Source: Anthoceros angustus
Taxonomy: Eukaryota; Plantae; Anthocerotophyta
Assembly: GCA_010909165.1 (NCBI GenBank)
Contig: VJWM01000134.1
Coordinates: 434,001-498,000, forward strand
Direction: 5' to 3'
Length of the DNA: 64,000 bases
Shown in pieces: positions 1-64,000 of this stretch. Position 1 is the stretch's first letter. Every line of letters begins with the position of its first letter. A model generated the notes under the pieces. It did not search any database. It saw nothing but the letters and a program-made list of their open reading frames with translations, and was not told where the DNA came from. The translations under genes and the position numbers were made by a program.

Positions 1-456
1 TACGTTCTCGTTCCTCCACAGTAGGCTCCTCCCATCGTTGAGTACGAGCATCCAACAACAGCCCATTACATTACGATCGCATAAGAACCGGAAAAGCGGC
101 CGGTGTGGGTAGAGTGCGGCGGCATGCGGTGATTAGTTGGAAACCATGGAGACTTCTCCACAGCCTTCACAGGATGCGGACTATGATATGGTTCCAAAAC
201 ATCTTGCAACCGGAGCTGATCATCACGGCTCTTTGAAGTGCCAATTGCAAAATTGTGCATGGAGCCCAATTGGTCCAATAGCGTGGCGGTGGGCAAAGCT
301 ACCGACTGCGACATCCATGACAAAAGCGGAGATCCCACCACATGTTGGATCAGCGTGGCATCGACAAACAAGTGCGGCCGAGGATCTAAATGTGCGGAGT
401 ATTCTCGAGCACATACACCATATGAGGGTGCACTGAAGCCAATGCAAAATCGGCGT
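1..456 (-). repeat. Second, partial copy of the DNMT segment (direct repeat of ~1017-1467; period ~1.02 kb)
   Basis: 1-456 aligns by eye to 1017-1467 with scattered substitutions and 1-3 bp indels. The junction interrupts the RT start at ~455. Confidence 0.9.
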
Positions 457-914
457 GGATGGCGAATCAACCCGGCTTCATGTAACTCCTTACAACGTCG
501 TCCACGATCTCCCACTCGGCGGGGCTAAGGCGGTACGGCGCTGTCGCCGGCTCATTAGTGGTCGGTGAACACGGAACTGCATCACATTACAAGTGCCCAA
601 CTCCTTCATAGAAGGCAAAACAATCTCGGTACTTAGAGTCACTTAACTGCCTCGATCTTACATCAAGCGAGACCCCATATTCCGAAACATATCGAGGCTC
701 AAGCTGCTGCGGTGATGATAAACGGTCTCCGAATCCAAAGAATTGCTCGACCACAAGCCGAATGATGGACACGAAAGCTATTGACTCCCCGGCATCCAGT
801 ATAAGAGAGATCTTTGGAATCGGAAAGGGCAAGTGAGCGACATCTGGATGACATGCTCCACCTGAAATAAACCCACAAAAGCGGAGCACGCGACAAGATT
901 TGAAACACTAAACA

Positions 915-1800
915 AATGGTAACGAGCCAGGTAAGCACATGTAAATCCATAGCACGCCCGAGAGCAGCAATCCGTGACGAGTCGCCAATGGTACAGCATG
1001 AGTATCAAACCCCATGATACGTTCTCGTTCTTCCACAGGAGGCTCCTCCCATCGTTGAGTACGAACATTCAACAACAGCCCATTGCCACGATACGCGCAT
1101 AAGAACCGGAAAAGCGGCGGTGTGGGTAGAGTGCGGCGGCATGCGGTGATTAGTTGGAAACCACGGAGACTTCTCCACGGCCTTCACCGGACGCGGACTA
1201 TGATATGGTTCCAAAACATCTTGGCCGGGCTGATCATCACGTATGTCTGAAGTGCCAATTGCAAAATTGTGCATGGAGCCCAATTGGTCCAATAGGCGTA
1301 AGCGGTGGGCAAAGCTACCGACTGCGCGGCATCCATGACAAACGGAGATCCCACCACATGTTGGATCAAGCGTAGCATCGACAAACAAGTGCGGCCGAGG
1401 ATCTAAATGTGCGGAGTATTCTCGAGCACATACACCATATGAGGGTGCACTGAAGCCAATGCAAAATACGAGCCAACGACAAAAGCGATCCGCTCGTGGA
1501 TCACGCAAACCCGCACCTTGGCCAGCACGGAAAACCCGACACTCCCATCCGATCACCGGATCAGCGGGCAAAGCACGGATGTGAGATTGGTGAATGTCCG
1601 ACATCTTGAGGTAAAGCGTTGAGCGTAGTCACCCGTCGATCGAAACAAACTAGCATGGCGAGAATGTAAGCTGCGCAAGCGATGCCCGACAATGTTGACG
1701 GCCGGACAATTGTCCGCGTAATGCATTATTGGCAGCGCGTGGCGTAATAGAGCCTCCAAGCGATTACAAACCCCAAATAATTCCAATACCACATAACCGC
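915..1800 (-). pseudogene. DNMT3-like C5 cytosine DNA methyltransferase domain embedded in retrotransposon pol (frameshifted)
   Basis: Motif I VVLELFG (~1772-1790); motif III LPQDV; motif IV IGWEC..RAGQGAGLRDPR (Cys ~1539-1541); motif VI YVLENT (~1417-1433); motif VIII MDAA.VGSFAHRLRL.WTN (~1280-1335); motif IX EEPPVEERERIMGF (~1006-1047); motif X LGRAMDLHVLTWL (~925-963). Order and spacing match DNMT3 (DAKEVSAAHRARYFWGN, EMERVFGF, LLGRSW). Confidence 0.85.
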
Positions 1801-2241
1801 GTACATGGGCCAAATAATGGTATGTTGATTCAAAGGTGGAAACAGCGTGGGCAGACTCAAGAAACGGCTTTGTCCCGGCCTCAATCCCGGCCGCATGAAA
1901 TTGCTGTAAAGCATACTCCACATCTTGCAGGCGGCATTCCATCTTGCTGACTCAACAACGGGGCACTCGCATCAGGGGCAATAGTATCCACATCATCAGA
2001 ACAACAGGTGGCATCATCCTCTGTAAAAATCCAAGAGATGTGATGATCATCCTGAGGTAACAAAGGATAACGTAACGCCGGACATGCTTGGCGGTCGACT
2101 AATGCAACGTCACCGGCAGCTAGCGATGATGTAAGTCAAAGGAATGTAGGCTAACGCCGACCACCCGCCAATCCGGACGATAATATGCTCCGTCCGGTTG
2201 TCAATCCCAACTCGGTGAGCGAAATTCACTTAGCGAGGATG

Positions 2242-2856
2242 TCATAGTTGGTGGCGGTGATACCAAAGCAGGCAAGTCCGGTGAACAACATCGTTAGTAC
2301 CAGGTTTCAAGACGATAGAAACTGGACACACTGTCTCGCCTTGAACTGGCTCGATGGCCCCTGTGGCGGTACGAATACTCCACGACGGGCTCTTGAGAGC
2401 ATCCCCCACCAGTCGTAACCGTGCCGCCAAGGCTTGACCGATGATAACAGGTTGTGCTCCAGTGTCCAAGAGCACCACCCGTGGTGCTACTCCATTGACA
2501 GTAACACAACCTGCCTGATTGTCAACCACGGCATGGTTGATAGGCACCTGCATCCGCTGAGTAGGCTGGATCATGGGATGACCATGCGAGGCTCGAGCCA
2601 ATTGTGACATCAGCACCTCCTTGCCAGCAGTCAGCTGCTCAAGCCAAGCCCCTTGACCAATTGTAGCCGCCCCTGGCCGTATAGAAGCCGACTCCTCGGG
2701 TGGTACCGCGCTCGAGGACGGCCCCGTCCGAGCAACCAAGGACTGCGCTAGCGTGGCAGCATATTGATCGCCAACATCCAGATCCGCTAAGGTGAACAAA
2801 GGAGCCCGTGCAATCTTCTGTACCAACTCGAAGTTGACCATGCACGGCGGGAACAC
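2242..2856 (-). pseudogene. Retropepsin aspartic protease domain of pol
   Basis: VTVNGVAPRVVLLDTGAQPVIIG catalytic DTG motif, followed by a SIRTATG flap-like segment. Confidence 0.88.
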
Positions 2857-2999
2857 GAATGGTTCCTACCAACCCTATGATGATTGTGGTGGCTCCAAAG
2901 CCTCCATCAAATGATCGCACCACGTAGAGGAATGGAAGTTCACGGTGACAATGGCACAAAGGACTTGGGCATATGACTGGGCGATTGGTGCGAGCAACG

Positions 3000-4400
3000 C
3001 GTGTTACATAAGCACACACTGCGGATCGTACATCATGCCCAGCCATGTTGCGGGCACATCCTCTTCCTCCACATCCACCTTATGAACCGTACATGCACGA
3101 TAGGGATCTCCATAATCCTCACCTTGACACCACGGTGAAGACACGGCCAGCCACACCGGAGGTTTAGTCGTCAGCGAGGCGGTCAACATATGGCGAGTAG
3201 TCGGTGGGCGACGGAGACTCCAAAGCCGTCATCTTCTCGAGATACGCAGCCACCTTGTGTTTGCCCTTATCCGCTTGACTTGCTCTTAGTGAGACACCCC
3301 CATGCTTGGGCTGCGAGGTCAAGGCTCCGATGGCTAACTGCGGTGTGGGAGTTTCTCCTTCACTGCTCCCCGATGCGTTCAGGAACCATACCGTAACAAC
3401 ATGACCCGTCTTGTGGCAATGTGTACAATATAATGCTTCCACCGCACATTTGCAAGCTGGTGACAAATGATCGATCAGCGATTACACATAGTGTGGGTAT
3501 TGACGAGATAGCGGTGACCACCTTAGCCATCTTAACCTGTCCAGGCTTAAGCACACCAGCAGAGCTGATAGGAGCTGCACCTTCAGAAGATACACCCTTC
3601 CCAGCAAACATGGTCTGATAATGAGCATACGACTTAGTGTGCTTATAAGCATAATGACGCCAACTCCTTGGATTACGCCTCTGGAAGACGATCTAGAGTG
3701 TATTGATCTCCATATTTGTCCTGGCGAGGTAAGCGTGAAAATGAAACAATGGTTAGTCTCGAGCGACCCGAGCTTTTGTCTTTGCCTCTTGATCGATCAA
3801 CATACGATTGCCATCCACGAGCTTTTGCGGCAATACCATTTACCTTTGTCTCTCTCCCGTCGTTTAGCGACAAGTTCGACTATCTTCTCGGGGTTTTAAA
3901 TGGAAAAGCCTTCTCCAATATAGTGAAAAACTCCTCTGAGTTGGCAAACTTGGGTACAACAACGTGCTCATCAATCCGGCGATGGCAGCCCTCTCTTGGT
4001 ATCATTCACTGTAGGCCTTACGTGGCCTTCCTGCTGCAACTTTGAGCTTGATGATGAGCCATTCTTTCTTTGCATGTGTGTTATGCAGCGCCCTATAAGC
4101 GGATTGGGAGAAAGCCGATTGCCGACAAATCGGGTATGTGCTTCATACAAATCCAACGCCTCGTCACTCATATATCCGGAAGTTGTTCAAACATATCTTG
4201 ATGAGAATATGCGGACCATGCTTAAACTTCACCGGGTAAGGAAATTGAAAAACATTACGAAATCTCTCAGCGTTTGAGTCGGGCACACTGAAAATTTATC
4301 GACCCTAAGCGATCAAGCTACGCCATCTCTTACGAACCACTCGAATCTTGGCCTCTTCAGCGGCGAATCGTCCTCGGTGATCACCAGCGTTTACAATACC
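3000..4400 (-). pseudogene. gag (frameshifted) with CCHC-type zinc knuckle
   Basis: ORF 3164-3466 contains LYCTHCHKTGHV; gag-like MSDEALDLYE in ORF 3971-4171; lies between the LTR and the protease. Boundaries approximate. Confidence 0.65.
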
Positions 4401-4709
4401 CGACAAGGGTGACCAGCTAACCAATTGTTGACGGCGCACGCGTACGACCTCCCCTCCTTTGTCAAATCGCTCCTGGTTCAAGTTACATAAACTCCACCGT
4501 CTCGGGTAACCCCTCTTGACGGGTAACCTGCGGATGACGAGGAACCACTCGCGATCTCAAGCAATAGCGTGGCTCTTCATCCTCCTCGGTGACATGCATT
4601 ACCCAGCAGACATGTCACGAGAACCACGCGAGCATGAGTGAAAACCTCCTACCTACGCTAACCAATGTCAGTAGCGGTGATGCTTCTCACGACCAACGCA
4701 GAAGCAAAT

Positions 4710-5292
4710 TGTCATACCTCCCCCCTCCTTCCACCGAGAAGCCAAAATGCAAAGACTCCGCTTCCCAGCTGAAGCAGTTGTGAGAGTAGAGGTTCGAGCT
4801 AAATGCGTCAGCATCCGCTCAAGTTGAGTGGAGAGTTCCCTAGTCCACAAAAAAACGCGCATCATCAACGTGCAGAATGTGGGCTCATGCTCACTCGATC
4901 ATGCAACCTATTGTTCCAACCGGATGAATTGCATAGAAAAGAATGACAATCGTGAGCCATTGCTCGGCCGATGCTCAGCGACCGCTTTCCATTCTGAGAC
5001 TCTCTGACTCGGCTACCAACACAGGACCTCTTAAGCTCGTCCCCGTCTCATCCGTCTCCATCTCGTGCCAACTGCCTGATTCGCTCCCGCTCCCGCCATC
5101 ACTTCTCGGTAACTTTGTTCGCATCATCATTCATGCGGATTCTCAACCAAAAGCCTAAATCTCGGCGCCCTATTCACATAGGCACCGGCACACCATTGAC
5201 CTAATCGTGTTTTCTGTTACCACGCATTTATACCCACATGCGCGAATTAACCTAGAACCGCTTATGTTAGCCCTACATATCGCAGCATGACA
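4710..5292 (-). repeat. Candidate 5' LTR (~583 bp) of the DNMT-bearing retroelement
   Basis: Perfect 6-bp inverted termini TGTCAT (4710-4715) and ATGACA (5287-5292), directly upstream of gag. Sequence character changes abruptly after 5292. No matching TSD, as expected when the partner LTR lies outside the window. Confidence 0.6.
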
Positions 5293-5399
5293 GGCGTGAG
5301 TGCTGTTTAAATACTCCAGAGTTAGGGTTCCATATGCTTCGAGGAGTCTGTGTGCGTGGCAGGTTTTTATTGGCCAGCAGGTTCGTTTTACGCCCTGCC

Positions 5400-6720
5400 G
5401 TTAAGAGGTTCGGAAAGTAGGTTAGGTGTTGCATGGCTAGGTTTGGAACAAGGTGACTAGGTTTGGTTGAGGTGGGCGCCGGCGGCAGACGAATGGCGAT
5501 CCTAGCTTGGTTTGGTGCCCGGCTCGGTAGTTTAGGTTTGGTATTTTCAAATCTGGTTTGGTAGAGAGAGAGTCGCGGCGCCGACAGAGTGAGAAGGGTT
5601 AGGGTTTGGTGGCCTATATAAACGGGTTCACCAAATGCCGAAGTCTTTTTGCTGTTGTGTTGTCGAGGGCCGAGGAACTTCTAGCTGCGTCTCTCCTCCC
5701 TTCGCTTTTGGCCTTTTCCTTTGTCCGAATGCCAAGGTCTTTTTAGAGTTCCAAGTTTTCATTCTGGCTTTTGTCCGAGGGCCAAGGCGTTTGCTTCCTC
5801 AGTTTTTGCAGTCCGAAGGCGAAGGTGCTTTGTGGTCTACGCTATCAAGGCGCTTCTTGAAAGGTCTAGACCTGCTGGTAGCACTTGTCCTGTTTTCAGT
5901 TCCCTTTTGCGTTGTATGTCTGCGCAGCCTCGTCGTTCTTTGTCTGCACCCCATCTTGTTCTGTTTGCATGTGGTTTATGGTGGTTTTGTTTCGTTTTTT
6001 TAGCTCGATCTGGACACTCTTGTATTGTCGGTCAGTCGTTTTTATTGTACAGTTCTTTGTTGTGCTTTTCGGCCGAGGTTAAAGCTCCGTTTTCTTGATT
6101 CTGTTGTTGGCCTCTCTCTTCCTTTGTCCTTACGCTCTTATGTTTTTTTGTCCGAAGGCCAAGGTCTTTTTAGTGTTTCAAGGTTTTTCATTCTGGCTTT
6201 GTCCGAAGGCCAAGGGGTTTGCTCCCTCAGTTGTTGCGTTTCGAAGGCCAAGGTGCCTTGTCGTCAGCGCTATCAAGGCGCTTCTTTAAAGGTCTTGACT
6301 TGTTTTAGTACTTGTTCTGTTCTCACTTTCCTTCTGTTTGTCTGCGCAACCTCGTCGTTCTTTGTCTGCTTAGTGCCGTCTATTCTTTTTGGTGTTTTTT
6401 GGTTCTGTTTCGTTTTGGTAGGTTGACCTGGACACTTCTTTTTGTGGTAAGTGGTTGCGTTTTTGTTGGCGCTCTAGTCTAGCCTTTTGCTTTTCGTTTT
6501 TATGTTCTTCCTTATTCCCGTTTTCTGTTGTGATCCACAGTCAATGAGGCATACATCTGTGATTTTGTGTCTGTGTCTTTACAAATGTAGGCTTAGGTTG
6601 TTGTCCGAAGGCCAAGGTCTATTCGCGTTCCGAATAATTAGGATATTTTGTTCTTCGTTTCTTGTTCGAGGGGCAAGGGGTTGCTTCCAAAGTTGTTTCG
6701 GGTCGAAGGGCTAGGAGCCT
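5400..6720 (+). promoter_or_regulatory. Repeat-rich promoter/5'-leader module: GGTTTGG repeats, TATATAAA (5615-5622), GAAGGCCAAGG array, internal ~425-bp duplication
   Basis: Clear sequence homology to 28080-28640; 5690-6100 is repeated at 6110-6500; downstream sequence is strongly T-rich on +. Confidence 0.6.
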
Positions 6721-7674
6721 TGGCGGGGTGTCACGGCCTTTAGGGTAGACCTGTTTGTTTGTTGGTGTGTTTTGAAGGTTCCGTTTGTGTTTATTGTCGT
6801 TTTGCCTAGTCTCGTCCGTTTCTCTTTCTCTTTGTCTTATTTTTTGTAGCTCATAGCCACTACCATGTTGTTCTAACGGTGAGCTCAGTTTTGTTTGCGC
6901 TTTGTTTAAACCTGTGTTTTCGTGTCAGTCTTGTCTTTCAGTGCTTGTTTCTTGTGGTCTTTTGGCCTCGAATGCTTAATTTTTGTGCTGTTACGCTTCA
7001 CCGTTGTGTCTCGTTTTTTTGAAAACGTTCAAGACTCACTCGTGAAGTGCCTCCTCAGTTGACAGGAGTAATATCTAGTCGTCGGGTTTGTCCTGTGTCT
7101 CATCTGTCCCTGTTTTGATTTTCTTTGTATCTTGCTATGTTGTCTGAAGTTGATCATGCAGTTGTCTTTGGTCTACTTGTGATTGTCTTCATCTAGCTTA
7201 TGTGTTTGCTTGGTCTTATCTTTTATCTCCATTGCAGCTGTTTTCCTTATTGCTGAGTAATAACACTTGTGGACATGCTAGGTAGCCTCATTCCTTATGC
7301 CCGAGCAACTCTGCCGACCTTTTATATGGCAGTTTCAAAGTGACGCTATGGTCCATGCTTTGGCTGGTCATTTAAAATGACCATATTTGTGAAATTGCTA
7401 AACTGCACATGAAACCCGAAATGAATGAAACCCTAAACAGGTTCAAGATACCTAACCCGCTCCCTCCCCATGGATGTCGGCTGGCTGGCCAGTGTCGTCT
7501 CTAATGGGCGCCGGCACGCCATCTCCTCGTTCGCTCGCTCCCTATGGACGCCGGCCAGCCTTTCCCATGGGCGCTTGTATATAGAGTCTTAATTTGACAT
7601 TTCCGACGTGTAATGACATGAACAAGTAGTCAAGTGGTGGTTGTTTTGTTTAGAAACTCTAAGTCTTGGGTTTG

Positions 7675-8037
7675 AGCCCTGTATTCTTAAGTACTTTGCG
7701 TTTTTGGAAGGGCTGTCTTTGTTTTGTTTGGGCCCTGTATTCTTAAAATGAGAGTGTCAAAATTTTAAATTGGGTCCAGCAGGGCCTTGTATTCTTAGAA
7801 TGAGAGTGTCAAAATTTCAAATCGGGTCTAGCAGTAAACCTGTTTCAGGAGAGCCACTCTTCTCCACATTCACTTGGTAAACTCACTCAATTCACACTTC
7901 TCCGTCTTCGTTTGAGCCCTGTATTCTTAGAATGAGAGTATTAAAATTTTAAATCGGGTCCAGCAGTAAACCTATTTCAGGAGAGCCACTCTTCTCCACA
8001 TTCATTTGGTAAACTCAGTCAATTCATACTTCTCCGC
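7675..8037. repeat. Local tandem repeats: ~130-bp unit x2 plus partial copies beginning CCCTGTATTCTTA
   Basis: 7786-7905 and 7915-8037 are near identical; partial units start at ~7675 and ~7734. Confidence 0.85.
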
Positions 8038-9601
8038 TAGATCCTGTAGGGAACCTCCCTTCTTCACAATTGATCATAGGAGCAATAATCGGCTTAGTTT
8101 AAGAGCTCATGGATTCACCATATGAGATCCTGTTGATGTTGAGTAGTAAAATAGTGCAAATATTTTTTGGAAAGCACTTTTAGAAAATGAACATGATGAA
8201 CTATGCATTATTACTCAGGTTTCTCAATGTGAATCTTCCTACTGTGACTATACAAGTTCATTGAGCATGAAATGGTAAATACGAGACATATACGAATTGT
8301 AAGAGTTATACTGCCAAAAAAGACATGAACTAAACTAAAAGTTGATCTCACATTTTATAGTATCGCACGTGGAAACCAGCCCGACCCATTCACACACCTT
8401 GTGTGAAGAAGAGATGTAGGCACAAAAAAGTGCTCACGTAAAAGATGAAAGGAATTATCTCGAAGACAATGATGATGATGTTTTATGACCATACGGTAGC
8501 CAACATCTCTAAGTACAGTGTATACACAATGGAAAAACGGAGGTATGTGGCAAATTTATAAGAGAGCGTGATTTCGATATAGGGCCAATATGTTCCTAAA
8601 TGTGGATATGAAGTGAGAAAATTGACTACCTGCCTCGTATTGTAATAAAAAATAAATTTTATAAAAATATTTATAGTAATTATAATTTATTATTATTTAG
8701 ATAGGTAGTTCACAGTTCGCTTTGTTGTCTAGGATGTGAAAGGCTCATGAGTCCCAGCCGAGGAGAAAATGCACGGAAGAGCTCCCTCTTGTGAAAAAAC
8801 TTCGGCCTTCGGAACAACATCTAGCCTTGTTCTAGGAGAGTTTTATTTGTGAAGGAGCGATGGTGGGAGGGAGTGATAGCGAGGGGATGTAGGAGGGTGC
8901 AGGAAGCGGATGCAGGAGGGAGCGATGGCGAATGTGGGAGTAGGTGAATAATATTATTGGTACCAAAATATGAATGATCATCTAATATGGGTTCATGTAG
9001 ATGAAAAAATTGAAGTGGAAGTTTGGAAGTATTGAAATTCTTGCAGATGTATTATGGCCACGCTCTTTGCACCTTTCTATGAGTCTATTTTTCCTCCTTT
9101 CCTCATTAGTAGCTACATTTGATATGCCTACCATTCACATCCAGAGCTAGTTGTTTTTGTCTTTTATTTAGAATCAAGGCTTATGGTAAAGCATACTACA
9201 TCTGCACCTACGGAATGGGACTCCTTGTTTTCATATGCTCGCTCTGCCGATGAGGTTGGCCCCGGACTTCAAACGCGGGAACGCAACATTTCAGCTCCGG
9301 TAGTGAGTGGGCCCTTCCTTATTCCTTCCTGGCCTGGGACTCTCGAGACGATTGTTGCTGGAGGTCCAAGATCATGTTTCCACATGCCGATGGCTCCGTA
9401 ACGAAGTTGATGGTTGTTGCAGCTGGATTGCAGGTATGTTGCGGGGTTCATGCGGGGAAATGAGCAAGCTCACGTCCATCTGGTGCATCCAGCAGGTGGG
9501 CAGGCGTGGCTGGGCTCACACCTTGCATTTTGATCATGGGTGAGAGTGCAGTTTTGGGGCACGGGCCCCGTGTCTGAACACAAAGGAGGTTGGGGTCTTT
9601 G

Positions 9602-12139
9602 ATGGCCAGACAGGGCAGGTTTGTTTCCAGGGACATGTTATGTTGCCTGAAGGGATGTGGGTTGAAGGGAGATGTGGCTGTTGGCAGATGGACGGGGATG
9701 CAGGGGGCACGACAGTTGTTTGAGAAATTACCATCAGCATTTGTGAGAGCAGGAGATAGTGAGCATGGTGAAGTGGAGCAGGCTAAGCATCTGTACTATG
9801 AGATGAACAATTCGAGCAGCCTGTTTGTGGCTGCCCTGAAGGCCTGTGGGAGTGCAGGGGATCTGGTGAAGGGGAGGTCTGTGCACGCTGATGTGGCTAG
9901 GGCTGGTCTTCAGTCGAATGTGATGGTCGGGAGCGCACTGGTGGACATGTATGTCAAGTGTGGGAGGCTGGCAGACGCTTGCAGAGTGTTCGGTGGACTG
10001 GAGAGGAAGAACGTGGTGACATGGAATGCCATGTTGGGAGGGTATGTTCGGCATGGGCTTGCTCAGTCAGCTCTTGATCTTTACGCGAGCATGCTAAGGG
10101 ATGGTAGCACGCTAGCTAACAGTGTTACGTTCGTCTTCCTCCTTAAGGCTTGTGGCAGTGTAGGAGCCCTGTTAGAAGGCATCCGGTTTCACGCGCAGAT
10201 CGTGGAACAGGGGCTTGAAGCAAATGCGTTTGTGGGTAGCGCTTTGGTGGTCATGTATCTGAGATGTGGGAGCCTGGAGGATGCTCGAAAGGTGTTTGAC
10301 AGACTGCTGATGCGAGATGCTGCTACATGGAATGCGATGATGGGCGGGTATACTCAGCATGGGCTTGGGCACGAGGCCCTCAAGCTGTATGGCAAGATGC
10401 AGGAGGATGGTACTATGTTGGCAGGACAGACATTTGTGATGGCTCTCAAAGCGTGTAGCAGCATAGGAGCTGTCTCAGCAGGGAAACAACTTCATGCTCA
10501 GATCCTGGAAAGAGGACTTGAGGCGGACGTTTTTGTGGGGAGCTCCCTGGTGGATATGTATGTGAAATGTGGGAGTGTAAGTGATGCGTTCATTGTCTTT
10601 CGGAGGTTGTCGGATAGAGATGTTGTGGTATGGAATACAGTGATTGCAGGGTGTGTGCTTCAAGGCCTTTGTCGTGAGGCTCTTACATTGTATGTGAGCA
10701 TGCAGAAAGAGGGTTGGACACCGAATGAAGCCACGTTTGTCAGTGCTCTCAAAGCTTGTGGCAGCACTGGGTTCTTGCAAGAAGGGAAACAGATCCATGC
10801 GGAGATGCTGCAAAGGGGACTCGAAGTGACTGGGTGTGCAGGCAACACTCTTGTAGACCTGTACGCGAAATGTGGGAGCCTGGAGGATGCTCGCAAAGTG
10901 TTTGACAGATTATCGGGTTCGGATGCTGTGACATGGAATGCCATGATCTCGGGATATGCCCAGCATGGCCTTGGGCAGGAAGCTCTTGACCTTTACGCAG
11001 CCATGAAAGAGAGAGGCTTCACGCCGGATGAAGCAACGCTTGTTTGCATTCTGAAAGCATGTGGAAGTGTAGGAGCGCTACAGGAGGGTAAGCGCATTCA
11101 TGCTCACGTGCTCGAAAGGGGCCTCCAAGCATTCGTCTCTGTCGGGAACACGCTCGTGGACATGTATGCCAAATGTGGAAGCCTGGTGGATGCCAGGACT
11201 GTGTTTGAGGCGTTGCCTAAGAGGAATGTGGTCACATGGAATGCACTGATCAACGGATACGGCCAGCACAACGACTGCACAGCAGCTATCCAATGCTTCC
11301 ATCAAATGCAGCAACAGAGAATCGAGCCTGATGCAGCCACATTCACAGCTCTCCTTTCCGCATGCAGTCATGTGGCTTCGGTGGATGATGGTCAGCTCTA
11401 CTTCAACATGCTGGTGGAGAACTACGCCATCACACCCACAATAGAACACCAGACCTGCATGGTTGATCTCCTCGGCAGGTCCGGCCGTCTGGCTGAAGCA
11501 GAGGCCATGTTGCAGGCAATACCACTCAAGCACAGCGCCGCTGGTTGGAGGTCTCTGCTAAGATCCTGTGGAAGCCACAGTGACATCGTCCGAGCAAGGG
11601 CATGTTTCGACTGTCTTGTGGACCTGGAACCTCAGCAAGCTGCCGGGTATGCACTCATGTCTAGCATCTACACGGATGCCGGCATGTTCCAACATGCCCA
11701 CGAAATAGAGTTGCTGAGAACATGTGCAGGTGCTCGGAAGAAGCCAGCCAAAGCTCTTATCGAAGTGAACAACAAGGTCCACGAGTTCACTGTAGGGGAA
11801 CGAAGGAACGACCTGTTTTCCAAACTGAGAGGCCTGGAAGTGGAATCTACTGATGCATCCCGTGACCCCCGCACTGCCGAAGTGCTGAATTCACCAGCCT
11901 ACAGGGAAGTGGGAGATGCACTGTGCGGTCATGCTGAGAAATTGGCTCTGGCTTTCGGCCTCCTCAACACTCCCGAAGGCACCTCTCTGCTGGTCGTGAA
12001 AAACCTAAGGATGTGTGACCATTGCCACAGCGGAACCAAGATCATCTCCAAGCTTGAACAGAGAGAGATCATAGTTAGAGACGCCCACCGTACGCATCAT
12101 TTTCACGATGGCATGTGCTCATGTGGAGACAATCATTGA
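9602..12139 (+). CDS. PLS-class PPR protein with E domain and DYW:KP-type deaminase domain (organellar RNA editing factor), intronless
   Basis: Repeating P-L-S motifs (ALVDMYVKCG, VVTWNAMLGGY, TFVFLLKACG); KKPAKALIEV (11738-11767); HAEKLALAFG; KNLRMCDHCH; C-terminus CSCGDNH. First in-frame ATG at 9602. Confidence 0.97.
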   Translation: MARQGRFVSRDMLCCLKGCGLKGDVAVGRWTGMQGARQLFEKLPSAFVRAGDSEHGEVEQAKHLYYEMNNSSSLFVAALKACGSAGDLVKGRSVHADVARAGLQSNVMVGSALVDMYVKCGRLADACRVFGGLERKNVVTWNAMLGGYVRHGLAQSALDLYASMLRDGSTLANSVTFVFLLKACGSVGALLEGIRFHAQIVEQGLEANAFVGSALVVMYLRCGSLEDARKVFDRLLMRDAATWNAMMGGYTQHGLGHEALKLYGKMQEDGTMLAGQTFVMALKACSSIGAVSAGKQLHAQILERGLEADVFVGSSLVDMYVKCGSVSDAFIVFRRLSDRDVVVWNTVIAGCVLQGLCREALTLYVSMQKEGWTPNEATFVSALKACGSTGFLQEGKQIHAEMLQRGLEVTGCAGNTLVDLYAKCGSLEDARKVFDRLSGSDAVTWNAMISGYAQHGLGQEALDLYAAMKERGFTPDEATLVCILKACGSVGALQEGKRIHAHVLERGLQAFVSVGNTLVDMYAKCGSLVDARTVFEALPKRNVVTWNALINGYGQHNDCTAAIQCFHQMQQQRIEPDAATFTALLSACSHVASVDDGQLYFNMLVENYAITPTIEHQTCMVDLLGRSGRLAEAEAMLQAIPLKHSAAGWRSLLRSCGSHSDIVRARACFDCLVDLEPQQAAGYALMSSIYTDAGMFQHAHEIELLRTCAGARKKPAKALIEVNNKVHEFTVGERRNDLFSKLRGLEVESTDASRDPRTAEVLNSPAYREVGDALCGHAEKLALAFGLLNTPEGTSLLVVKNLRMCDHCHSGTKIISKLEQREIIVRDAHRTHHFHDGMCSCGDNH

Positions 12140-48727: not shown

Positions 48728-49382
48728 TAGGCCAGTTGGACAAGATTTAGGCTTAGGCGCAAGATTTTGGCATCTTCCTCCCTATACACGTGTCGTTCTC
48801 TCAGCGATCCTCCCCCAACACCATGCCTCGGTCTCCGCAGCGTGCATTCCACTTACCCAAACGAGTGCATTCCCGCCCTGCTGCACATGGAGGCCACGTG
48901 GGAAGTTGAACTCGTCCAGTGTTGAAACCGTCATGGCTCGCCGTGTGACATTCCCTTCCACTTTTCAGGAAATAAGCTAATGTTTCCTCCGATTCATCTA
49001 CAAATACCCTAGAAAAAACGACGTGTATCTGAAAAAGCCGTGCAGTCCACGGCGGGGATTTTTTACAGGCACAGCCAGGTGGCCTTTCGGGATAAGGCGA
49101 TCAGCCGGTGCCGACGAGGATGAACCTTCCCGTGAAAGCCCCCGTTCCAGTCCTTTATAGCCGCGACTTACGTCCGCGACTTGGAGCAGGGCGCGGTCGA
49201 GGCAGGGGTCGGTCAAGCCTGCATCCGAAAAGAGCGCGCTTTTTCCAGGTGAGGACACGGAGCCGACATCACGCATTGCATTTGATTCAATAGTTTGTTT
49301 AGTTTCTGGCAGCGCATTCCGCCATGGCAACTTTCAAGGAGTGATCTGAAGATGGGAGTGGGTTGTGGCAGTGACGAGGAAG

Positions 49383-50291
49383 ATGAAGGGTGTGTGCCTC
49401 CCCGTGCAGCTCGCCATTGTGGCGCTGCTCATGGTTGCAAGCAGCGGCATTGGGGCCGCGGCCAGCAACCAGCATCACAAACGGCCCGACGTCCCCAAGG
49501 GAGTGAGCCTCTCCTACCCGCCCTTCACCTCGGCCCTCAACTGCAGCTTCGACGGAGCAGACGTTCCCGTGAGGGACATCTGCACGCCGTCCGTCCCGCC
49601 CGGGCAGATCGTTTTCTCCTATGACAATGACGTCATCTCCGTGCGCTACGCGTACAACAAGAAGGTGCGGCTGTACAAGAAGAAGAGCAGGCTCGCGGCC
49701 TCCTTCTCCACGGAGTACGTCATCAACTTTGACCGCGACAGTGAGCGGAGCGTGCAGCGGGTGTTCGGAGGGGGGTTCGCCTTCGCCATCACCCCCACCC
49801 AGGACGTGGGCAGCAGCGGGCCCGAGAGCTTTGGTTTGTTCGAGATCGATCCCGCCACGGGCAAGTCGCTGCGCGGGAAGAAGACCAAGACCGTGGCTGT
49901 GGAGATTGACACGTCCCGGGTGGAGGGGGAGACCTGGGACCCTCAGATTCCGCATGTCGGGCTGGATATCAACAGCGTGGACTCCGTGGTGGACAGCTTC
50001 CTCTGGGACGGGGCCAGCTTCATCGATCGGAAGATTGGGGTGTTCATTGATTACGATGCCAGGAAGGAGTATCTGTCTGTGAAGTTTCAGAACATCTCTG
50101 CTAACGGGAAGCCTGATAAGAAGAAGGCCAAGCTGTACCTTCAGTACTCGGGTTTGAAGCTCTCGGATTACGTGAATGAGAAGTCGTATGTTGGGTTCTC
50201 TTCCAGAGTTCCTGTCACCACTGATGGGGTCTACAGGCTTTACGACTGGAAGTTCAGCACCAAGTGGGTTGTCACTCGTCACTGGCATTGA
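49383..50291 (+). CDS. Secreted legume (L-type) lectin-domain protein, no kinase domain, intronless
   Basis: Signal peptide MKGVCLPVQLAIVALLMVASSG; ASFSTEY, GGGFAFAI, TVAVEIDT, HVGLDINSVDS, IDYDA, SYVGFSS, LYDWKFST. Confidence 0.9.
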   Translation: MKGVCLPVQLAIVALLMVASSGIGAAASNQHHKRPDVPKGVSLSYPPFTSALNCSFDGADVPVRDICTPSVPPGQIVFSYDNDVISVRYAYNKKVRLYKKKSRLAASFSTEYVINFDRDSERSVQRVFGGGFAFAITPTQDVGSSGPESFGLFEIDPATGKSLRGKKTKTVAVEIDTSRVEGETWDPQIPHVGLDINSVDSVVDSFLWDGASFIDRKIGVFIDYDARKEYLSVKFQNISANGKPDKKKAKLYLQYSGLKLSDYVNEKSYVGFSSRVPVTTDGVYRLYDWKFSTKWVVTRHWH

Positions 50292-51089
50292 TCCATTTGC
50301 GTGTAGTGGGTTGTGACCCGCGAGTGGCACTGATGTTTTGCGTGTAGCGGTGTTTAATACCAGGTCGTTTGTCAGCAGCAAGTGGCGGTGTCTGCATTTC
50401 TAGGCAGACGAAGCTGCATTGCCTGCACATCGGCTTAGTCCTACCGGCTTGACAGAGCCTGACTTAGATCTGTAGACAAAGATTTTTCGAATTCTGCTTG
50501 CTGGTCCTCGCCCATAACACTGACGTTACCCGATTTAGCCAAGACTTGTCCAGATGTACCGCCAACAAATACAGTGCCAAGACTTTTCCACATGCATTAA
50601 AAACAAGTACTGAATTGGAATGGTTGGAACCATCATGTTGTCTATTTTCTTGTGCTCGACAAGGAAACAACAGTTATGCCTGAACACGGAGATCAAGTCC
50701 CACAACTCAATTTATGGCTGAAGACCCTTCAGTGAAGAGTGGAACTTTCAGTCTGTAGCCCTCAAAGTAGAATCAAGGCCGGTCTTCCTCAACAGCCTTA
50801 CAGTTGCTAAACACTTCAGCAAAGATTGCTCAGCTGCCTGTGCCTGTTTGCTCCACTCTGCTACCTCGAACAATTTGATCTCACATAATCACACACGTCC
50901 CAGCCACTGCTACGGAGTTTGCGTTAACTATACAGGTCCTCCTTGAAGTCTGAAAGGACTACATATTAGGTTGTCGACTTCTTCAATTGCAGAGAGGTCT
51001 TTCTGTTACGCGTTTTCTTTCCAGCTGCCTTCAGAAGCCCTGGTGAAGGTCACCCTGTTTGCACGGGATACCGTCTCCGACTGTTCACA

Positions 51090-61599: not shown

Positions 61600-64000
61600 G
61601 CCGTAAAGATTTTCTTGGTGGTGACACATCAGACATAATGTCCACCACCAGTCCTTATGCATCCCCTTTATTACCACCTCCGTTTCACTTTGTTGAGTAC
61701 CTTCGTTCCACGTCGGCCCCACCTTAAAGATGCAACGTTATACGGCCAAAAGGCGGCGTAGTGCACAAAGGCACTGTGGACCCGGTTGATCCGTTTGGTA
61801 GTTCCATCTCCCAGGTGCGTTCAACTCCGCAGAGGCGCCCCTGCGTCGCTCCCTTCTCCGCTTTGCGTGGGTCCATTTGACTTAGGGTTTGTCCTGCACT
61901 CCTCCACGTCTTCCTCCGCACGGCCGCAATTCTTCGGGAAGGTGTCCTCCTGATCCTGCAGGACCGGCTCCGTCTTTAATCTGGACAGGAAGTCAGCGTT
62001 TTGGTGTTGCCGCCCTTGCCTGGTCTCCACCTCAAAGGTGAACTCCTGTAGCAACAGAATCCACCTCGCAATTCGTCCGGACAAGTCTGCCTTGTTCACC
62101 AAATGCTTGAGCGCGAAGTGATCGACATAGAACACAAACTCATTGGGCAGAAGGTAATGCCTGAATTTCTTAACTGCGTATACCATCGCCTCTCGCTCGT
62201 GTAGTGTACCGTTCAGCATCGTGGTGTCTTCCGTAGTAGATTGGATGGTCCCTCGCTTATCGTCCTTTTGGTGACACCACTCCAATGGCAAAAGGCATCC
62301 ACATACATGGAATCGCTTTCCCGGTCGGACCTTTCGTCTTGGGGCAGCGATCGGTAGGAGGTCTCAGATGCCGCCTCCCTCTACAGTGTCCAGGTCCACT
62401 CCTCCTTCTTCAGTACCTCCGTTAGCTTGGCGGCCCGCTTTGCAAAGTCTGGATGGCGCCTGTAGTAACCCACCATGCCGGGAACCCCGCTCCTTCAAAT
62501 TCGTGAGTGAGGTTTGGATGACCTTCACCTTGTCTTGGTCACTTCTATCCTCGCGACACGATGTCCAACAAGATTCCTCGTCATGCGAGTAGCATTTCTC
62601 GGATGCGAGCCTGATTGGGTCTCCTTACAGCGTTCCAAACACTTCATAAGTGTCCAACGTGCTTTTCCTCTTCCCGTGCATAAAGTCGTCCGAGGAATAC
62701 CTCCATGAAGTCCCTTAGGAAGTCACGAAGACATTGGTCACCATCCGCATGAATCCGGTGCTCTGTCATCCCGAACTTCATGGCGAGCGTTCCCCACTCC
62801 GTGGTGAGCGTTGTCTTATCCCGATCCGACTCCGTAGGTGCGGTTAGTTGTAAGATGTCAGTCAAAAGGAGTAAGTACTTCGTCCTGCCACCTTGTCCAG
62901 TATGTCATCTACGAAGGGCATGGGAAAGTGGTCCTTCTCGGTAGCGGCGTTGAGTTTTCTCCAATCCTGACAGACGCGAATCTGGCCTTGTTGTTTCTTG
63001 GGCACGACTACGATCGGTGCTACCCACTCACTGTTCACGATCGGGAAGATGATGTCCGCCTCCAAATATTTGTCCAGGACCTCTTTGACCTTCAGCGAGT
63101 GTTTGGGATTTAGCTTATCTTGGATCCGAGCACTCCGCTTCGGTCTATCGGTGTCCCTTGTTTGAATGCCTTTCATATCCGTGACCTTGAAAGCGAACAC
63201 CTCGCTGAATTCCCCCAACAACTGTGTGAGGTCTCGTTTCAACTCTGCCGGCATACCCTTGCGAATTTTAGGAATTTCCACAGGCGGACCTCCACGTCTT
63301 CCACATCGTCGGGATTGGCCAGTCTCCCTTTCTCTTCTTTGGCCTCGTCGAGCCGTCATCCTCCACCGAGGTTCATCTTCACGCATTCCCCACTCTCGGG
63401 AAGTTCGTAGTGAGCAGGTCACTTCCTCGTTCCGCCTCTTCATCCTCTTGGACCCTCCTCTTCGCCGCCCTCGGCTCTTGTTACATTAGCCACCGGAAGC
63501 AATCGGCGACCTCCTCGTCCACCACCTCGCTCCAAGGCGTCCCTCGGTAATCCATCTCCTCCTCCGAACCACGTGATTTTGGGGAAAGGGTAGCATCCGT
63601 GTCTTCCCTTTCATCATCGTCTATCCTCGGCCGGTGTACCCCTCGATGGTGCTCACGGTTTCCCCGGTATGTCCTTACTGCTCCAAGTGGCGCCTCTTCC
63701 TTCTCTTACCTTCGGATCCCAATCCACGGGTTTAAAGTGGATTTCCTTCTCACCAGTGTAACCGTGAGCAAGTCCAAGCCACGGGCTAGCGATGTTCGTA
63801 CCCTAGAGGCCCCGTGGCTTTGATGACCACAAAGTCCAGCGTGTACGGTGCTCCTGAGATATTAGCTTGTACTGCGAGCAATTCCCCTGCAGGCGCACGT
63901 CTCGACATGTCCGCCATCCTTAGGGTCTTGGTGGAGTGTTGAGGTTGGTAAACCCAGTGCGGTGGCCTCCGTAATGAGGTTAACCCCCGATCCCGTATCC
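61600..64000 (-). mobile_element. Second Ty3/gypsy pol, degenerate: protease-RT-RNase H-start of integrase zinc finger
   Basis: DTGSGVNLIT at the window end; SEWVAPIVVVPKK..RVCQDWRKLN..DHFPMPFVDDIL; VFLDDF (one extra G); MVYAVKKFRHYL..YVDHFAL..ARWILLLQEF..NADFLSR; MH..GGGHY..TTKKI. No DNMT insert between protease and RT. Confidence 0.93.

Follow-up and report, generated by a model that had tools for sequence, protein, structure and literature searches.

A Ty3/gypsy-type retrotransposon copy with a probable DNMT3-type methyltransferase domain in a land plant

The minus strand at the start of a 64,000-nucleotide stretch deposited for Anthoceros angustus (Anthocerotophyta; GenBank assembly GCA_010909165.1, contig VJWM01000134.1, positions 434,001 to 498,000 of the forward strand; the whole stretch is called the window below) was analyzed for a retrotransposon that appears to encode its own DNA methyltransferase. 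Positions 1 to ~5300 are probably a copy of a Ty3/gypsy-type long terminal repeat (LTR) retrotransposon with a DNMT3-type domain in Pol, located between the protease and the reverse transcriptase (RT). The original prediction, a gypsy-type element with a DNMT3-like domain in a land plant, is upheld at the level of motifs, but its proposals on the activity of this copy and on an element boundary at 5292 are not. All coordinates refer to the 64-kb window, the element is read on the minus strand, and frames are numbered 0, 1, and 2.

Every methyltransferase motif string listed in the original prediction was found on the minus strand at the place given for it, by direct translation and with a motif locator (Table 1), and the locator also confirmed the canonical, non-rearranged motif order I-IV-VI-VIII-IX-X. 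The motifs are indeed split over frames, with at least seven frame changes between motifs I and X plus one stop, and reading them from I to X requires no introns. The reading of motif VIII by itself needs two frame changes. At motif VI, the E-N-V position reads L-E-N-T both here (1415-1432) and in the second unit of a tandem duplication described below (398-415). The methyltransferase-like part shares strand and direction with the protease and the RT (motif locator), and its predicted position between the retropepsin (2242-2856) and the RT N-terminus (497-538) is borne out.

Table 1. Features of the element and its surroundings in the 64-kb window, ordered by position.
Feature	Position	Strand	Remarks
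Unit 2 of the 1017-bp tandem duplication, duplicating 1018-1467 (motifs VI-IX)	1-450	-	Cut by the window edge
RT N-terminus: PYRLSPAEWEIVDD at 497-538 (frame 2), then HEAGLIRH at 459-482 (frame 1)	459-538	-	Translation
Motif X, RIAALGRAMD	945-974	-	Frame 1; LGRAMD at 945-962
Motif IX, EERERIMGFDTH	998-1037	-	Frame 2; EERERIMGF at 1007-1033
Target-recognition-domain (TRD) region, ending FPVLM (1098-1112)	1098-1290	-	Frame 1
Motif VIII, FVMDAA at 1325-1342 (frame 2), SFAHRLR at 1296-1316 (frame 1), YWTN at 1283-1294 (frame 2)	1283-1342	-	
Motif VI, HPHMVYVLENT, closed by an in-frame TAG stop	1403-1470	-	Frame 2; YVLENT at 1415-1432
Motifs IV-V: DPVIGWEC at 1539-1562, VFRAG, GLRDPRADRF at 1482-1511	1482-1568	-	Frame 1
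Motif III candidate, LPQDV	1600-1614	-	Frame 0
Motif I, VLELFG followed by a disrupted FxGxG	1748-1797	-	Frame 2; VLELFG at 1772-1789
Retropepsin open reading frame (ORF), 204 amino acids	2242-2856	-	Frame 0; active-site LLDTGA at 2455-2472
Presumed gag and 5′ part of the element	2857-5292	-	Putative; 5′ boundary as in the original prediction
Gag-like zinc-knuckle remnant (candidate), CTHCHKTGH	3401-3427	-	Translation; last Cys absent
Tandem-repeat block, period ~425 nt, 4 units	5720-6640		Between the element and the first host gene
Tandem-repeat block, period 132 nt, 2-3 units	7723-8036		Between the element and the first host gene
PPR protein, 849 amino acids, intact, intron-less, PLS-type, with E motif and DYW deaminase	9590-12139	+	DYW_deaminase E = 1.3e-30
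Second gypsy fragment	61600-64000	-	DTGS near 63.99 kb, RT start near 63.0 kb, RNase H at 61.8-62.3 kb

The retropepsin ORF matches two Pfam families, Asp_protease_2 (E = 1e-6) and gag-asp_proteas (E = 1.5e-6), and is thus a retroviral-type aspartic protease as found in Ty3/gypsy elements. The RT-start pattern at the other end is covered by no Pfam model and agrees with the RT start of a second gypsy element in the same window. The description as gypsy-type is based on the protease, by Pfam, and on about 30 RT residues, the only such parts that lie inside the window; the RT beyond these first ~30 residues, the RNase H, and the integrase of the element are outside it. On the gag side, the string CTHCHKTGH may be what is left of a zinc knuckle, judging from its letters; the ORFs around it have no match in Pfam, nor does any of the stretch from 2857 to 5292.

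The likeness to mammalian DNMT3A extends from motif order and spacing to the signatures of motifs VIII, IX, and X and of the TRD end. In a frameshift-aware alignment, motif VIII reads VMDAAQSV\SFAHRLR/Y-WTN against VMIDAKEV\SAAHRAR/YFWGN in DNMT3A, with the pattern S-x-A-H-R-x-R-Y-W-x-N here facing SAAHRARYFWGN. Motif IX, EERERIMGFDTH, aligns with TEMERVFGFPVH (ERERIMGF against EMERVFGF), the end of the TRD reads FPVLM against FPVFM, and motif X has LGRAM against LGRSW (LLGRSWS in DNMT3A). DNMT3-type signatures are thus present in motifs VIII to X and at the TRD end, together with the non-rearranged order, as evidence at the level of motifs.

The weight of these likenesses was measured with an order-constrained test built from six human DNMT3A blocks, one each for motifs I, IV, VI, VIII, IX, and X. 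The blocks and their spacings agree with the DNMT3A catalytic domain printed in 10.64898/2026.03.20.713290. In the frameshift-aware version, the chain of six blocks scores 161-168 at this site, which is the maximum over the window, the next best place on either strand reaching 146. None of 1000 and none of 2000 shuffles attained the site score, nor did any of 30 and of 100 decoy sets (z ~5). When motif V and the TRD end were added, both chosen post hoc, the resulting eight blocks gave 202 versus 177 (z = 5.3). Eight genuine C5-methyltransferase genes from bacteria and phages, scored in the same manner as a positive control, gave 144-178 with six blocks and 176-220 with eight; the target, though broken, scores like a real member of the C5-methyltransferase superfamily. 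Motifs I, IV, VI, VIII, IX, and X occur in order and with family-like distances, the spacings among all six being 0.75-1.35 of those in DNMT3A. An ungapped version with spacings limited to 0.6-1.5 times those of DNMT3A gave 144 for the target versus 111.8 ± 7.2 for 191 control tiles, a score reached by 2 of 500 shuffles, and without the spacing limits the ungapped chain was only marginal.

The individual blocks contribute unequally. Blocks VIII and IX each find their window-wide best match here, separated by ~300 nt and correctly ordered, and both score higher than in all eight control enzymes (38 versus 20-35 for VIII, 38 versus 23-29 for IX). The TRD block, chosen post hoc, reaches 22 versus 14-21 in the eight controls. 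The target is weaker at motifs I and IV: block IV scores 26 versus 32-49 in the bacterial and phage enzymes, and block I (22-26) is not above background when taken alone. The same is true for block X (21-28). Strong VIII, IX, and TRD beside weak I and IV is the pattern that would be expected of a DNMT3-type domain with decayed catalytic motifs.

A considerable number of results weigh against this assignment. Two of the catalytic motifs, I and IV, are defective: in place of the catalytic Pro-Cys, frame 1 reads G-W-E-C at 1539-1550, and in place of the AdoMet-binding F-x-G-x-G there is L-F-G-V-C-N-R, one residue short of the DNMT3A string LFDGIATG. None of 19 stop-free pieces matched PF00145 (DNA_methylase) at E up to 10. 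Six pieces submitted to phmmer against the PDB gave chance matches only (prolactin receptor, PAIP1), an exhaustive phmmer search of the 199-amino-acid ORF at 1005-1604 against 1.84 billion proteins returned 0 matches at E ≤ 0.001, and a feature-based search of the ESM Atlas yielded no match that could be used. No second copy of the element was recovered by protein, metagenome, or viral searches. A C5-methyltransferase profile hidden Markov model (HMM) from E. coli Dcm and eight phage enzymes (nine sequences), whose power on DNMT3-type sequences is uncertain, gave no signal when run by pieces; its frameshift-aware dynamic-programming version scored 17.8 for the target versus 15.6 ± 1.9 for other tiles of the window, and a block chain derived from it gave p ~0.07. 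In the ungapped DNMT3A test, decoy sets reached equally high maxima over the whole window, and the signal vanished once block IX was left out. The block test was moreover designed after the sequence had been read, it works at the level of motifs and is no replacement for a profile search or a tree, and on its own it does not tell DNMT3 apart from other C5-methyltransferases, E. coli Dcm scoring higher overall. A separate G-F-P-C string was noticed at 1525-1536 (minus strand, frame 0), five codons downstream of G-W-E-C; as a candidate for motif IV it was rejected, being in another frame and not fitting the downstream motif, and it may be a coincidence.

Some other searches were equally blank. 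Word-indexed protein searches found nothing for the ORF at 1005-1604 and nothing for the protease ORF at E up to 10, scans of metagenome and viral contigs with these two ORFs revealed no relative, and a search started from E. coli Dcm brought up nothing beyond its close orthologues, which were of no use for a broad profile. An exact look-up of the host proteins of the window in the protein collection gave no match, and therefore the genome itself seems to be absent from the searched databases. The standard searches are blank because the reading shifts frame at least seven times and contains one stop, and they are weak evidence against a methyltransferase because its in-frame stretches span only 10-60 residues and the E-values scale with databases of billions of sequences.

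These negative results are nevertheless what would be seen if the resemblance were due to chance, that is, if the stretch of ~600 residues between protease and RT were unrelated or unrecognized sequence from which motifs had been picked by eye out of three frames. The non-significant bacterial-type profile tests and the behavior of the decoys in the ungapped test are in line with this explanation, and frame 1 (207 amino acids) and frame 2 are both open over long stretches, either of which can supply motifs. It does not account for a frameshift-aware score that is missed by all 2000 shuffles and all 100 decoy sets and exceeds the rest of the window by 15-25 units, for two independent blocks, VIII and IX, that are both window-best, correctly ordered, and on the expected strand, or for a total equal to that of real C5-methyltransferase genes with DNMT3A-like spacing of all six motifs. 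We consider chance resemblance unlikely, and the DNMT3-type domain the better explanation of the stretch.

A close examination of the left end of the window identified a direct repeat. Positions 1-450 repeat 1018-1467 at 92.6% identity over 458 aligned columns (blastn), with a repeat spacing of 1014-1017. The simplest reading is a tandem duplication of 1017 bp, the unit of which comprises the C-terminal two thirds of the methyltransferase-like part (motifs VI-X) and the first ~30 residues of the RT. The second unit carries motifs VI and VIII, the TRD, and the start of IX and then leaves the window. The predicted RT start is accordingly confirmed in that PYRLSPAEWEIVDD is present, but it continues into a second copy of motifs VI-IX and not into RT, because 1-450 duplicates 1018-1467. 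Since the unit spans motif X and the RT start in one piece, the two were contiguous before the duplication arose.

The two units differ by ~17 substitutions and ~10 small indel events, and they break frame at different places; the second has FVMDVAVGSFAHR in a single frame at 286-324, where the first needs a shift. The indels between them form clusters of compensating 1-3-nt changes that restore the frame. We also noticed that a stop-free stretch of 207 codons at 1008-1628 (minus strand, frame 1) covers parts that are out of the methyltransferase reading frame. In the duplicate unit the corresponding frame (69-524) likewise runs for 152 codons without a stop, although several indels separate the two units.

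The duplication bears on the question of whether the domain belongs to the element. The sequence could be truly derived from DNMT3 and still not be a heritable module, for instance a fragment of a host pseudogene or a one-off capture or nesting event in this copy. The copy has been rearranged by the tandem duplication, and its boundaries are without support: no LTR-like or inverted repeats were found in 1-9500, and there is no match above chance to a primer-binding site for initiator tRNA-Met, which leaves the proposed boundary at 5292 unsupported by repeats, LTR, or primer-binding site. An isolated insertion of this kind is hard to reconcile with the strand and direction shared with protease and RT, with a region from 550 to 2240 that is uninterrupted by any LTR, repeat, or target-site feature, with the former contiguity of motif X and RT start, and with motifs I-X that are readable without introns. 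It appears very unlikely to us, and a domain that is part of Pol remains the preferred interpretation.

As assembled, this copy cannot encode an enzyme, because of its frame changes, the one stop, Glu-Cys in place of Pro-Cys, and the disrupted motif I. The proposal that the element may methylate its own cDNA or reshape host methylation fails for this copy on the same grounds. Whether the damage is old is a different matter. The observed/expected ratio of CpG is 0.96 in the element and 1.09 in its methyltransferase part, compared with 0.54 in the PPR gene and 0.70 in the window. Many of the breaks in frame probably stem from indel errors in an assembly poorly polished in repeats and not from age, since CpG is normal and the indels between the two units are clustered and compensating. 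The real element may be less damaged than the assembled copy. The ABC-F gene of the window is CpG-depleted (0.66) like the PPR-DYW gene (0.54), and the contrast between element and genes is the opposite of what is expected for a long-methylated transposon beside unmethylated genes.

The window also contains genes of the host: the PPR protein listed in Table 1, in which the C-terminus has G-D-N-H in place of D-Y-W, as well as an ABC-F protein, an F-box protein, and a PLATZ protein. PLS-class PPR-DYW editing factors are a hallmark of land plants, and the PPR-E-DYW and PLATZ genes together substantiate the claim of a land-plant host, which is probably a hornwort. If the contig were chimeric, with the first 5.3 kb coming from an alga or another organism as a contaminant or through misassembly, the element would have nothing to do with these genes, and the tandem-repeat block at 5.7-8.0 kb that separates it from the first host gene is a possible site of such a misjoin. 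GC content is continuous, at 0.51-0.52 versus 0.43-0.55 in the rest, and no relative of the element turned up in the metagenome or viral collections, which makes a foreign origin extremely unlikely in our view.

At the other end of the window, the second gypsy fragment has an RNase H recognized by Pfam (RT_RNaseH, E = 1.9e-12). It had been put forward as an internal contrast without the insert, and the block tests indeed gave no methyltransferase signal there; the contrast is of limited weight because this gypsy belongs to a different family. A stretch rich in arginine and glutamate lies between its protease and RT. Elsewhere in the window, two long ORFs overlap on opposite strands, one of 360 amino acids at 49299-50381 (minus) and one of 308 amino acids at 49365-50291 (plus); the 360-amino-acid ORF has no match in Pfam.

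The closest known counterpart is KnitGypsy-Dnmt3 of the charophyte Klebsormidium nitens (de Mendoza et al. 2018, Nat Commun 9:1341, PMC5890265), in which intron-less DNMT3-type domains with non-rearranged motifs reside in the Gypsy Pol ORF and are under purifying selection. In that element motif X is poorly conserved, and the activity in yeast was inconclusive (PMC5890265). The two elements share an intron-less, non-rearranged DNMT3-type domain in a Gypsy-type Pol of a streptophyte, and also the poorly conserved motif X (LGRAMD in this element). They differ in that the host here is a land plant, that this copy is frame-broken, tandemly duplicated, and without the Pro of Pro-Cys, and that the paper describes DIRS-like terminal repeats whereas no terminal repeats were seen here. 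The present element would represent the same design in a new host lineage; its likeness to the Klebsormidium element is one of architecture and may reflect membership in that family or an independent capture.

Other comparisons are more distant. SymbioDIRS-Dnmt3 and SymbioLINE-Dnmt are likewise retrotransposon-encoded DNMTs within Pol, but belong to the DIRS (tyrosine recombinase) and LINE classes and to another eukaryotic supergroup. Plant DRM proteins have a DNMT3-related catalytic domain in streptophytes too, with the difference that their motifs are circularly rearranged, VI-X preceding I-V (PMC5890265), whereas the order here is I-IV-VI-VIII-IX-X. Host DNMT3s, among which that of Physcomitrium is described as a de novo methyltransferase in a passage of PMC10952607 citing Yaari et al. 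2019, are unlike the present domain in that it sits inside a retrotransposon pol and has a degenerate catalytic motif IV. No PWWP or ADD region was detected upstream of the methyltransferase-like part.

The statement in the original prediction that no such element is known from embryophytes agrees with our literature search, which found only the report on Klebsormidium and dinoflagellates and none from a land plant. The land plants surveyed in 2018 were Arabidopsis, Mimulus, Aquilegia, Brachypodium, Sorghum, Selaginella, and Physcomitrella, and hornworts were not included (PMC5890265). A re-survey in 2025 mentions retrotransposon-embedded DNMT3 only as earlier reported (PMC12344493).

A plausible course of events can be outlined for such a family. 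A C5 DNA methyltransferase domain of ~300 residues, with motifs I-X in non-rearranged order, would have been inserted between protease and RT; in intact members it would be translated within Gag-Pol and travel with the RT. It would then most likely methylate the new cDNA or the fresh insertion, as we infer after de Mendoza et al. 2018, and this methylation would perhaps make the copy resemble methylated host DNA or limit its own expression. The SymbioDIRS-Dnmt3 domains of the dinoflagellate Symbiodinium perform de novo CG methylation in yeast (PMC5890265), which supports the proposed mechanism.

It is possible, though on balance doubtful, that the hornwort harbors a living Ty3/gypsy family encoding a DNMT3-type de novo methyltransferase, with the breaks in this copy mostly due to assembly errors. 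This family would be the first case of a retrotransposon DNMT in embryophytes, either inherited from streptophyte algae, as a relative of KnitGypsy-Dnmt3, or captured independently, and it could add to the de novo methylation of the host.

Retrotransposons that carry methyltransferases invert the usual view of methylation as a weapon of the host against transposons, and they have been documented so far in dinoflagellates and in one charophyte alga. The copy described here is a broken relic, and its value is that of a pointer to a family. A land-plant family, if true, would mean that the design either persisted when plants colonized land or evolved a second time. Such a family would also provide a plant for experiments on the benefit that a transposon draws from DNA methylation, as hornworts can now be transformed (see PMC10952725).

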